The notes under the pieces were generated by a model that saw only the letters and a list, made by a program, of their open reading frames with translations, did not search any database and was not told the origin of the DNA. The position numbers and the translations under genes were made by a program. From assembly GCA_023334545.1 (NCBI GenBank), contig JAADVB010000088.1:1-64000 (forward strand): a stretch of DNA of 64,000 nt, read 5' to 3'. Origin of the DNA: Salisapilia sapeloensis CBS 127946 (Eukaryota; Protista; Oomycota). Numbering within the stretch: position 1 is the stretch's first letter; every line of letters starts with the position of its first letter. Shown piece after piece: positions 20,367-24,374 of the stretch.

Positions 20367-21670
20367 ATGAATGCCAGGTCAAAAGCACGAAAGTCTAGCT
20401 CGAGTTCTGATACATCTTCGTCGTCGTCTGACACGCCTCGGTCCGGTCGATTTCCAAGTGTGCCAAAGCCAGTGTATAAAGCGAAACTGGAAGACATTAT
20501 TTTAGACGCGAAACGTCGTCATCGTACTGGTATGTCGTGATTCGAGTATCTGATGGATCTTACGAGACTTACGACGAGATAGACATTAAAAAGGATGCTT
20601 GGGATCGAGAAGGCTTTGCTGGCTCAGACGTTTGTGAGCTTCAGATTGGGTCCTCTAATTCTTCTGACCAGAGCAATATTCGTCGTGAGTCTTGTCGAGA
20701 CCTTTCGGTCGATCGATTCTTTGAAGAGTATGAAAGTCCGAGCGTCCCAGTTGTGATTGAAGACATTCCGCAAGAGTATGACTGGTCTGCACTAAGAAAC
20801 TGGGACTTTGAGGTACGTCATGTACTTCTTATTTTTATCGGTAAGAGTCTCATGTGCAAGTAGAAATTGAAAGAAAAGTATAAAAATGTGCGTCTCAAGT
20901 GTGGTGAAGACGACGACGGTCGTTCGATTCGGATGAAAGTGAAGCATTTCATCCGGTATATGCGCAAGCAGACCGACGATTCTCCTCTCTACGTCTTCGA
21001 TAGTACGTTTGACGACGATGAAACGACCAAGCCGTTGCTATTCGACTACAAAGTCCCATTATACTTTCAAGATGATCTATTCAACCTTGTGTCGGAGAAG
21101 AGACGACCTCCCTATCGTTGGTTCCTCATCGGACCCAAACGCTCCGGCACTTGTGTTCACATCGATCCACTCGGTACGTCTGCTTGGAACACGTTGATCG
21201 TCGGGCGTAAACGATGGGTTCTTTTCCCACCAGACGTACCGAAACGAATCGCCAAAGGAACAGACGAAGTACTGAAAGGAGAGGACGATGAAGCTGTCAA
21301 TTACTTCATGGACATCCTCCCTCGCATCCGACGCAAGTATCCGGACGTTGCGAAGAAATGCATAGACTTTATCCAGTACCCTGGTGACACGTGCTTCATC
21401 CCAGGCGGATGGTGGCATACGGTACTGAATCTAGACGACACGATCGCCGTGACGCAGAATTTCTGCAGCGTCCAGAACTTTGATCGCGTGTGGACTCGTA
21501 CCCGCAGCGGTCGGAAGCGTATGGCTGTCAAGTGGCTCGGGACACTGAAGGAAGAACGACCGGAGCTAGCGAAACGAGCGAAGAAGATGAATAAACGCGA
21601 TGGATTTATCATGCACGACAAACGCAAGCTACAAGATGCCAATACAAGTGCCAAACGGATGAAACAATAG
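20367..21670 (+). CDS. JMJD6: JMJD6 arginine demethylase / lysyl hydroxylase (JmjC), 3 exons
   Basis: LKCGEDDDGRSIRMK, DDSPLYVFDSTF, RPPYRWFLIGPKRSGTCVHIDPLGTSAWN, PGGWWHTVLNLDDTIAVTQNF; HxD...H iron ligands intact. Confidence 0.95.
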
Positions 21671-21735: not shown

Positions 21736-23451
21736 CTACCTTCGATCGCTTGGCGGCAACGCACACGAGACACGCAAAGGCGTTCCTTTAAACTCCTTTC
21801 CGTCCATTTCTTCCACCGCTCGGTTCATATCGTCCTGACTCTTCAACGTCACGAAACCAAAGCCTCGAGCAGTGATGCGCACCGTCTCATAGCCGAGGTA
21901 CTGGAAGAGGAAACCCAGCTCATCTCTCGTCGTCCCTTGCGGCAAGTTCCCGACGTACACTTCGTACGGATGAGGGTTACTAAACCTTCCACCTCGTCCA
22001 CCTCGTGGATTCGACTGACGGAATCGATTTGGATTCGTATTTGACGGCGCATTCCCGTTTTGGTTTTGTAGATGCGATGGCACTTGGGCATGCCCCCACC
22101 AGACCGAGTGCACAATCACACTCTCAGCATTTCCATTCTCGTCTCTTGTCGGAATCGACAGCACGAGGTTCTCGCCTTCTCGAATCGGCACGCGATGACG
22201 AAATTCATCCTGAAACACTTCTTCGATAAACACGAGAAAGCCAGTCGGCACGGCCGTTAGACGCAACGTAAATGGCTCACCAAAGGTAATGGGCGACCGA
22301 GGCAGAGGCTGGGCACATCCCCATCGACCATCGATATTGGAATTCTGAACGACTTGGCGGTTCCGACGCGGATTAAAGTGGTACAAGACCGTTCCTGGAG
22401 GCGTGGCACCAGACAGTAAGGACGACTGGGTCGAAAGATTAAAGCAGCATCGGTGGGAGGAAGACGGGATGGTCGCGTGGATCACGAGCGTGTTGTTCGT
22501 GGCGAACGCAACTTCCGGGAGAACAAGGTCCAGTGGTGTCTGATTTGCTGCTGAGTCCCAATCTTCCGTTCGTAAGAAACTTTCTAGTGGTAACTGGATC
22601 GACGATCGTCCGCCTTGGATCTTAATTTCCCCAGGTCGATCACTCTTGACCGTACGAGGTCGTTTCGCAGGTGCCGGAGGTGGTGTATTGTTATTAGTAT
22701 TGTTGTTCGTAGTGGTCGAATTGACGACACTTCCACCTTTCAGGATGTCTGCCAACGGATTCGAACGTTTCGATCCCGTCGTGTTCGCCAAGGAAAACGA
22801 ATTAGTTCGACCTAGGCTAGGTTTTGATTTCTTTGCCATCAATTGCTTGGCACGTTCCATTGCAGATAACCCCGTTGTTACGTTCGTACCACTGGAGGTT
22901 CCATTTGTACTAGAAAACATAAGTAGAGGCTAATACTATTGTACAAACGCAGCGTACCTTGTGCTAGTGGACGAAGCACCTTTAGGCGTGCCTGCATTCG
23001 ACCCAGAATGTTGACGTTGGAGCAGAAAGTTCTGTACACGCTCTCGATCTGCTTGACTCTTCTGCCTTGGCGTCGTGGAGCTCGTGGTCGTACTAGCAGC
23101 GGCAGTCGAGAGCGAAGCGACCTGTGGTGTACCACCTGCCGTGGTGGATGGCACGTAGCTCCCAGCTTTAAAGGCTGTAGCTTGAGGTGGACTAGTAAAG
23201 GTAGCTTCTGTGTTCGCTGTGGTGATGCCTTCCGCCTCCTATGACGACTGTGAATAGAGATAAATGGACATGCATAAGAGAAGGAGTACTTTTGGAAAGA
23301 AGAGATCATGGAGGAGTTTTTCCTGTCTCGTGAGGTATTTCCCATCCACATGGAATAGCTTCATCTCAGACTGAAGTCTAGCGACATACCCTCCGTTCTT
23401 ATCGATGATCTCATCGTCTCCACCATGCTCCGACATGTCCACTGCCGCCAT
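21736..23451 (-). CDS. Galectin-like domain + RGG box + RRM fusion protein (3 exons, ~538 aa)
   Basis: Exons 23451-23290, 23238-22958 and 22909-21736 join in frame. Galectin motifs YHFNPR, VVQNS and GRWG, then FRHR; RGGRGGR; RRM with RNP2 VYVGNL and RNP1 RGFGFVTL. Confidence 0.8.
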
Positions 23452-23645: not shown

Positions 23646-24374
23646 ATGACGGCATCATATTTCTACTTGGCAACTACGCTTCTGATTAACTTGACGTTCT
23701 TTGATGCCTTGTCAATAGCTCAAAATAGTGACAGATGGCCGCCGAGTCTTGATTATTTCGAGCAATACTTGGACGAAGTACGCCAGGAAGCAGCTACGAA
23801 AGAACAGGAGCTTATCGACCAACTCCAGATCGCTCGTAACTCTATATTGCAATGGCCGAGCAAAGAACAGTCGACACAATTAGATCCAAAGCAAAGGTTG
23901 GAAAGCCAATTCAATAGTCTCCTGGAAACGTCCATGGAAGAGCTCGAGTATGAAAAGCAAAAACTGTACCTTGAAATGGACATTGCCGTTCGTCAGATTG
24001 AAGAATATATGACCAAAGCAAAGGAAATGAAGAAGACGCAGGAAAAGCAGGCGACGACTCGCACTCCAGGTCTATTCTACATCCTCCAGAGCCTATTCCA
24101 AGATTTTATGACCTGGACTATGAACGTCATGGCCACTGTGTGGGAGACACTCGTGATGCTACCTCTACGATGGCTATGGAACCAAATTGTATACGCCTGG
24201 TATAATATCATTGTGCCATTCCTATGGCTCAGTGGTCTCCTCGCCGTCTCCTACGCCCTTATCCAGGCAACTATTCGTGGTTTTGATATGTATAAGCAGA
24301 ATCAGCGGGAGAAGAAGGTAGTATATTCCGAACGTAGACGTATCCGTCGATCGTCTAAACCCGAGTCCAGCTAG
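23646..24374 (+). CDS. Hypothetical protein: signal peptide, coiled coil, C-terminal TM helix and basic tail
   Basis: 242-aa ORF; hydrophobic N-terminus, E/K/Q-rich heptads, TM IIVPFLWLSGLLAVSYALI. Confidence 0.7.
   Translation: MTASYFYLATTLLINLTFFDALSIAQNSDRWPPSLDYFEQYLDEVRQEAATKEQELIDQLQIARNSILQWPSKEQSTQLDPKQRLESQFNSLLETSMEELEYEKQKLYLEMDIAVRQIEEYMTKAKEMKKTQEKQATTRTPGLFYILQSLFQDFMTWTMNVMATVWETLVMLPLRWLWNQIVYAWYNIIVPFLWLSGLLAVSYALIQATIRGFDMYKQNQREKKVVYSERRRIRRSSKPESS

Follow-up and report, generated by a model that had tools for sequence, protein, structure and literature searches.

Can a galectin-type sugar pocket and an RNA-recognition motif (RRM) belong to one and the same protein, and what would the pocket of such a protein bind? 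The question was raised by a locus of the oomycete Salisapilia sapeloensis CBS 127946, situated in the first 64,000 nucleotides of contig JAADVB010000088.1 (assembly GCA_023334545.1), a stretch called the window below. It bears on a long-standing puzzle, namely why galectins, proteins defined by sugar binding, act in the nucleus and in ribonucleoprotein (RNP) and splicing complexes. An earlier note made from the letters of the window had read one minus-strand frame as a galectin-like domain, an RGGRGGR box and a C-terminal RRM. We found that the fusion is not peculiar to this genome; judged from sequence comparison, it is an old family already in public databases, in which the core of the galactose pocket is conserved while two of its classical residues are replaced.

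Domain composition and predicted fold

Both domains lie in a 394-codon stop-free open reading frame (ORF) at 21736-22920 on the minus strand, to which all features of the gene described below belong. Residues are numbered along this ORF; the number in the full-length protein is the ORF residue plus 144. Each domain scored above its curated Pfam cutoff: Gal-bind_lectin (PF00337) matched residues 138-248 with 54 bits against a cutoff of 22.1 (E 1.6e-14), and RRM_1 (PF00076) matched residues 321-383 with 49.3 bits against 20.7 (E 4.5e-13). The galectin-like beta-sandwich domain extends over residues ~112-279 (22084..22587), with the Pfam core at 22177-22509. It is followed by a linker, residues 286-313, that carries the RGGRGGR box (21985..22005), and by the RRM at residues ~318-388 (21757..21969), in which RNP2 (VYVGNL) and RNP1 (RGFGFVTL) are both intact. 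All coordinates in the earlier note were exact.

A sequence search of the PDB led the middle part to galectin-9, -7, -8 and -3, and the C-terminus to the RRMs of cS22/cp31, Pub1 and nucleolin. A profile of the galectin domain compared with the PDB found galectin-9 with an E-value of 4.9e-14. The structure was modelled with AlphaFold2 on a 17-sequence alignment, and in the model the middle domain adopts the galectin beta-sandwich that the earlier note had proposed for it. Predicted local distance difference test values (pLDDT), taken in blocks of ten residues, were mostly 83-94 in this domain and went down to 72-79 in two loop regions. The elements of the RRM follow the order beta-alpha-beta-beta-alpha-beta (strand 320-324, helix 332-338, strands 344-350 and 354-359, helix 362-372, strand 383-386) with pLDDT mostly 87-94. 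ORF residues 1-90 and the linker 286-313 are predicted to be disordered (pLDDT below 50). When the model was compared with the PDB by Foldseek, the 50 matches listed were all galectins, including galectin-7, galectin-8N, galectin-9N and C. elegans LEC-6, with a best E-value of 1.6e-10 and target-normalised template-modelling (TM) scores of 0.81-0.86, galectin-7 reaching up to 0.86. As a predicted and not a solved structure, the middle domain is a galectin carbohydrate-recognition domain (CRD) fold.

No signal peptide was found; the protein starts with MAAVDMSEHGGDDE..., which is acidic rather than hydrophobic, and this agrees with the earlier note, which had described a protein with a disordered N-terminal region that lacks a signal peptide. 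Transmembrane segments were likewise absent.

Gene structure

The locus is a real three-exon gene for a 538-residue protein, as far as can be read from sequence. It begins with an ATG at 23451 and ends with a TAG at 21738-21736. Exon 1 (23290..23451) comprises 54 codons including the start and encodes the acidic N-terminus with a conserved GKYLTxQE-LL motif. Intron 1 (23239..23289) is 51 nt long and has GT..AG borders (GTACTC...CATAG); if it is left unspliced, translation in frame 1 meets a TAG stop. Exon 2 (22958..23238), of 93 codons and 2 nt, encodes a Ser/Thr/Ala-rich disordered region with a conserved DRERVQNFLLQRQ motif. When intron 2 (22910..22957; 48 nt, GT..AG, GTACGC...TCTAG) is removed, the flanking exons together complete a Ser codon (AG|T), and the frame of the long ORF is preserved. 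Exon 3 (21736..22909), with 390 codons and the stop, encodes without a break in the frame what remains of the disordered region, followed by the galectin-like domain, the RGG box and finally the RRM. The sum of 54, 93, 1 and 390 residues reproduces the 538 residues of the spliced model in the earlier note.

The exons were searched one by one, and the splice sites at the locus are supported by homology. Exon 1 aligned with residues 16-44 (E 3e-07) and exon 2 with residues 80-151 (E 6e-12) of the Globisporangium splendens orthologue, so that the order of the exons agrees. In addition, the motifs GKYLTxQE-LL and DRERVQNFLLQRQ are kept in the alignment of oomycete orthologues. Exon 2 gave no credible Pfam family; a weak match, at E 0.032, to DPC4_C, a motif of the diatom pyrenoid, was below the Pfam cutoff and was dismissed.

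Distribution of the fusion

A word-indexed search returned 41 homologues at E <= 1e-42, and every named one was an oomycete. Nearly all of the 41 carried precomputed PF00337 and PF00076 annotations. The orthologues came from Phytophthora, Nothophytophthora, Peronospora, Bremia, Plasmopara, Hyaloperonospora, Peronosclerospora, Globisporangium, Pythium, Saprolegnia and Albugo, and cover the Peronosporales, Pythiales, Saprolegniales and Albuginales, i.e., all sampled orders. The best near-full-length identity was only 66-69%, for Phytophthora orthologues aligned over 94-98% of the length, which argues that the window's own species is absent from the collection; a fragment over 78% of the query reached 72%.

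The galectin-like domain alone was then used for an exhaustive profile search of 1.84 billion representatives of 50%-identity clusters, which gave 594 matches at E <= 1e-3. The best 150 of the 594 included 147 new ones, 78 with a single galectin-like domain and 69 of the animal type with multiple repeats. A C-terminal RRM was present in 56 of the 78 single-domain matches, adding at least 56 further clusters with the fusion, and most of the other 22 end directly after the galectin-like domain. None of the 69 multi-repeat matches had an RRM. The RRMs were detected with a hidden Markov model (HMM) iterated from the oomycete RRM, which found known RRM proteins and was silent on bird galectin-3 and the multi-galectins of catfish. 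Among 57 family members Pfam found the galectin domain in all, and RRM_1 in 31 at E <= 1e-3.

The family can be defined by a single galectin-like domain with HFNPR, a Trp, no Glu three residues after it (W+3) and a C-terminal WWG, followed by an RRM. The window protein has all of these, and they are present in 48-56 of the 57 members. Every member from the profile search that bears an organism name is a stramenopile: Aphanomyces euteiches, the xanthophytes Tribonema minus and T. gayanum, the brown alga Ectocarpus fasciculatus, the chrysophyte Epipyxis, the diatoms Corethron pennatum, Skeletonema potamos and Dactyliosolen fragilissimus, and the thraustochytrid Hondaea fermentalgiana, the protein of which is labelled "Galectin-related protein". 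The survey of stramenopiles that the earlier note had proposed thus extends the architecture from oomycetes to a thraustochytrid, diatoms, a xanthophyte lineage, a brown alga and a chrysophyte. Whether the two domains could come from separate transcripts is answered for several relatives, where both are found on single transcripts (Trinity ORFs, and MMETSP ORFs of which some bear the mark "type:complete"). The hard-wired fusion which that note had inferred from one locus now recurs in more than 90 proteins.

A quick maximum likelihood tree grouped ochrophytes, Hondaea and oomycetes roughly as vertical descent predicts, with weakly supported deep nodes and long branches, and placed the window protein on its own branch within the peronosporalean/pythialean clade. 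These data suggest an ancient stramenopile-wide family in which the two domains have been fused since before the oomycete, labyrinthulid and ochrophyte lineages split. A word-based search with the family alignment gave mostly oomycetes again and no names for the distant members. The shape search of the ESM Atlas found clusters with galectin only or RRM only, none with both, and its feature search gave no usable match.

The RRM is a canonical one and an ordinary member of its family. RNP1 and RNP2 vary little or not at all among oomycetes, and conservation extends to single residues, with V323, G324, G353, G355, F356 and V357 invariant in the oomycete alignment, and F339, L326 and the AFV core kept throughout the 57-sequence family alignment. 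The linkers of Peronosporales and Pythium orthologues are variable and rich in G, R and Y, and Saprolegnia is without such a linker; the RGG box is therefore not family-defining.

The architecture is visible in databases and yet unstudied, and its novelty lies in the combination of domains. The earlier note knew of no characterised galectin-RRM fusion. We also found none described in the literature on galectins with an RRM, on galectins of oomycetes, Phytophthora, stramenopiles and Phaeodactylum, or under the orthologue accessions. A 2025 review of chimerolectins (PMC12355970) mentions no RRM or RNA-binding partner. Orthologues have received the automatic names "Galectin", "Galectin-related protein", "31 kDa chloroplastic-like" and "cell-cell adhesion protein"; the third of these mirrors the RRM alone.

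Conservation of the sugar pocket

In galectin structures, His, Asn and Arg contact O4 and O5 of galactose (Gal), a second Asn and a Glu contact O6, a Trp stacks on the galactose, and the Glu together with an Arg holds O3 of the adjoining N-acetylglucosamine (GlcNAc) or glucose (Glc). In the window protein the contact triad for galactose O4 is HFNPR on strand S4 (H181, N183, R185; 22366..22380). The stacking Trp is kept in W200-G-C-A-Q-P (22306..22323, WG at 22323-22318), where the W+3 Glu has become Ala203 and the Arg five residues after the Trp (W+5) has become Pro205. Alignment with galectin-9N bore out the earlier note, which had reported the sugar-binding H, N, R, N and W as present and the Glu and Arg of WGxExR as replaced. 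Indeed, H181, N183, R185, V191/N193 and W200 are in register with the sugar-contact residues of galectin-9N (WGPEER) and galectin-8N. The full signature H-x-N-x-R...V-x-N...W-G-x-E-x-R is broken at the Glu and Arg. Profile match and predicted fold place the domain in the galectin superfamily; under the classical definition, which combines this signature with beta-galactoside binding, it would be at best "galectin-related".

The family alignment of 57 sequences has a mean column identity of 14%, against which the pocket stands out: H181 is kept in 53 sequences, N183 in 52, R185 in 55, N193 in 48 and W200 in 56, i.e., 84-98%. Such a difference speaks for selection on the pocket. Among the columns with at least 90% conservation are H181, F182, N183, P184, R185, W200, R243 (the "HR" of galectins), W121 and W274-W275-G276. 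The last three belong to WWGH (residues 274-277; 22090..22101), a family-specific motif that ends the last beta-strand. Its W, W and G are found in 55, 56 and 56 of the 57 members, it is invariant across the oomycetes, Albugo included, and it lies outside the stretch matched by animal galectins (profile positions ~48-166 only). Among the oomycetes, H, N, R, N and W are retained except in two Albugo-type sequences.

At W+3, all 41 aligned oomycete sequences have S, A, T or I. Asp is found there in seven of the 57 family members, and a few have Glu one residue later. Galectin-8N, with the motif WGREEI, also lacks the Arg and is still a lectin, which makes the missing Glu the graver departure. 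Taken together, the family appears to retain most of the galactose subsite without the clamp for the second sugar.

An oomycete-like clade of three sequences (P0038, P0053, P0057) has WG-x-x-E-S, with the Glu shifted one residue later than in WGxExR. This shifted Glu may be a remnant of the lost one or a displaced substitute for it.

Proposed function and alternatives

A basic motif resembling a nuclear localisation signal, KRPR (residues 86-89; 22654..22665), was read from the sequence just N-terminal to the folded domain. K86 is almost invariant, the VKRPR context is kept in the oomycete orthologues, and the motif may serve nuclear import. The lack of a signal peptide, KRPR, the RG-rich linker and the intact RNP1 and RNP2 together point to an intracellular RNA-binding protein, probably nuclear or nucleocytoplasmic.

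Where the protein resides, whether it binds RNA, whether its pocket has a ligand and of which kind, and any part in RNA processing are matters of inference. The reading that we favour, slightly more than we doubt it, is that of a bipartite adaptor: a nucleocytoplasmic RNA-binding protein, the variant galectin pocket of which would bind a conserved ligand other than N-acetyllactosamine (LacNAc). The RRM, aided by the RGG box, would bind RNA. The galectin-like domain would act as a ligand-docking module, having on its concave face a pocket that keeps the His, Asn, Arg, Asn and stacking Trp and has lost the Glu/Arg pair for the second sugar of lactose or LacNAc. In this way the protein would hold the pocket ligand and RNA, or RNP complexes, together. 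That the pocket core has stayed so strongly conserved over deep divergence speaks for a pocket that still binds something, and the uniform loss of the Glu/Arg pair speaks for a ligand other than classical lactose or LacNAc. The most plausible ligand would be an epitope resembling galactose, carried by a nucleocytoplasmic glycoprotein or glycoconjugate; a non-sugar partner is less likely. The glycan linked to hydroxyproline (Hyp) of Skp1 contains Gal-beta-1,3-GlcNAc and a terminal alpha-Gal, and its last glycosyltransferase was characterised from Pythium ultimum (10.1101/764241). Galactose-containing nucleocytoplasmic glycans thus exist in this part of the tree, and the Skp1 glycan is a candidate ligand only.

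An unlikely, more far-reaching form of this idea is that the protein is an ancestral stramenopile "glyco-reader", in which the pocket would read an intracellular galactose-containing glycan and, coupled to the RRM, let glycan status control the fate of the bound RNAs. The target read may be the O2-dependent Hyp-linked glycan of Skp1, known from Pythium among other protists; a glycosylated RNA or nucleoside is the other candidate. If true, this would be the first hard-wired lectin-RNA-binding effector, and an independent evolutionary counterpart of the indirect role of galectin-1 and -3 in animal nuclei.

Several observations weigh against an adaptor with a ligand-binding pocket. Glu at W+3 was found in none of the 57 family sequences, just 8 of which have Arg at W+5; mutagenesis of galectins has established that loss of the canonical Glu abolishes lactose binding, so that the domain may bind no carbohydrate at all. 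In Albugo laibachii and a relative, H, N, N and W are replaced (by Q, S, S/G and K), yet these natural "pocket-dead" variants retain WWGH, the RRM and the architecture as a whole, from which it follows that at least one lineage can do without the pocket. Part of the constraint on the HFNPR strand could be structural. In addition, disorder is predicted for the linker between the two domains, which hence gives no support for a fixed two-domain module. The absence of the W+3 Glu, the rarity of the W+5 Arg and the persistence of the Albugo proteins would all suit a carbohydrate-blind galectin-like domain that serves for protein-protein docking or oligomerisation in an otherwise ordinary RRM/RGG RNP protein. 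The position of the most conserved family-specific motifs, W121 and WWG at 274-276, outside the canonical sugar site fits such a module as well, and precedents are provided by non-lectin galectin relatives and by galectin-3, which associates with heterogeneous nuclear ribonucleoproteins (hnRNPs) and other nuclear RNP components (PMC4952364, PMC5338267). We regard this explanation as possible but doubtful, since H, N, R, N and W rank among the best-conserved columns of the alignment, which is unexpected for an idle pocket. The non-lectin relatives GRIFIN and GRP let their sugar-site residues drift. If the domain were a docking scaffold only, the family would be a modest addition to the non-lectin relatives of galectins.

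It is quite unlikely that the pocket reads a feature of nucleic acids, such as a ribose, a base or a glycosylated or hypermodified nucleoside, and forms a second RNA-recognition module beside the RRM. A Trp stacking platform amid His, Asn and Arg might well fit a base or a sugar ring, and the pocket is permanently fused to the RRM across the family, but no galectin fold is known to us to bind a nucleoside. That the protein is an adhesion lectin, secreted or on the cell surface, is very improbable. Galectins are often extracellular and the Phytophthora palmivora orthologue is called "Putative cell-cell adhesion protein", but this name is an automatic transfer, and a protein that lacks a signal peptide and a transmembrane segment and carries an RRM with intact RNP motifs, an RGG box and KRPR does not look like an adhesin. 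That separate galectin-like and RRM genes were read as one is barely credible. The splice sites at this locus are supported by homology; both domains are encoded in one stop-free exon, complete ORFs derived from transcripts are among the proteins that share the architecture, and in Phytophthora nicotianae one ORF free of introns encodes the orthologue, with a translation identical to the database protein.

The family offers a natural experiment, in which a galectin pocket has long been fused to an RRM, with its galactose core conserved and its second-sugar contacts lost. The identity of the ligand would tell whether lectin-type recognition inside the cell couples directly to RNA binding. The family occurs in pathogens of crops and fish (Phytophthora, Pythium, Saprolegnia, Aphanomyces) and in ecologically dominant diatoms with genetic tools, where this question is open to direct test. 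As far as sequence comparison goes, it is a conserved, testable oddity that bears on the role of galectin folds in the nucleus.

Comparison with known proteins

The window protein shares with the CRDs of galectin-7, -8N and -9N the PF00337 match, the predicted beta-sandwich, and HFNPR, V-x-N and the stacking Trp in register. It differs from them in lacking the W+3 Glu, in belonging to a family mostly without the W+5 Arg and in an identity of only 20-27%, and it adds N-terminal strands, the C-terminal WWGH, the RG-rich linker and the RRM. Mammalian galectin-3, and also galectin-1, provide a parallel in setting, with a galectin fold that works in the nucleus or cytoplasm alongside RNA-binding proteins; galectin-3 moreover has a disordered N-terminal tail before its CRD. 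However, galectin-3 itself lacks an RRM and depends on partners such as hnRNPs for its contact with RNA, whereas the RRM is covalently attached here, and galectin-3 has the full WGxExR and binds LacNAc. Orthology is not implied. The contacts of galectin-3 with nuclear RNPs are independent of sugar (PMC4952364, PMC5338267).

The stramenopile family keeps the H/N/R/N/W pentad strongly and adds an RRM, in which it departs from GRIFIN, GRP/LGALSL and galectin-10. Those are single-domain proteins with a galectin fold and an incomplete sugar signature, without lectin activity, which have lost several of the H/N/R/N/W residues. GT31 galactosyltransferases of plants and animals also carry a galectin domain as one module, but there the partner is an enzyme of the secretory pathway, and here it is RNA-binding. 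With single-RRM and RGG proteins (cp31/cS22, Pub1 and the nucleolin RRMs) the family shares an RRM with RNP1 and RNP2, here adjoined by an RG-rich segment; those proteins are without a domain of lectin fold.

Neighbouring genes and additional observations

The earlier note had pointed out that the gene sits tail-to-tail with JMJD6, possibly by coincidence. The neighbour is a true JMJD6 orthologue, the last exon of which lies at 20867-21670 on the plus strand (PDB JMJD6, 6mev/6gdy, E 5e-87; Pfam JmjC and Cupin_8). The two genes are convergent with stop codons 65 bp apart, and at such a distance their 3' ends have either to overlap or to stop within very little space. In Pythium oligandrum (SPLM01000001.1, 4332-13779), JMJD6, the galectin-RRM gene and several Peptidase_S8 subtilases are found together. 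There JMJD6 stands head-to-head with the galectin-RRM gene, and the subtilases are on the other side, as in the window; the change from tail-to-tail to head-to-head implies a local inversion. No JMJD6 was found near the orthologue in Phytophthora nicotianae (6-kb flanks) or Saprolegnia parasitica (8-kb flanks). As the adjacency recurs only in Pythium oligandrum and in the opposite orientation, a functional link to JMJD6 was rejected as unsupported. Coincidence is the better reading, and the pairing looks like residual regional synteny rather than a functional pair.

In Phytophthora nicotianae (KI669563.1, 4189-7542), an Rpb7-like gene and then a gene with an LplA-B_cat domain (lipoate-ligase-like) are located upstream of the orthologue. 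In the window, an intergenic region of 195 bp separates the galectin-RRM gene from a divergent ORF of 242 residues (23646-24374, plus strand). The N-terminus of this ORF is hydrophobic, its middle is charged and probably a coiled coil, and another hydrophobic segment lies close to its C-terminus.

The top-scoring matches of the galectin profile search were proteins of Ictalurus punctatus and I. furcatus, of ~2,500-3,800 residues with 18-26 tandem galectin repeats. One catfish cluster among them, of 3,100-3,400 residues with 18-20 repeats, is annotated just as "uncharacterized".

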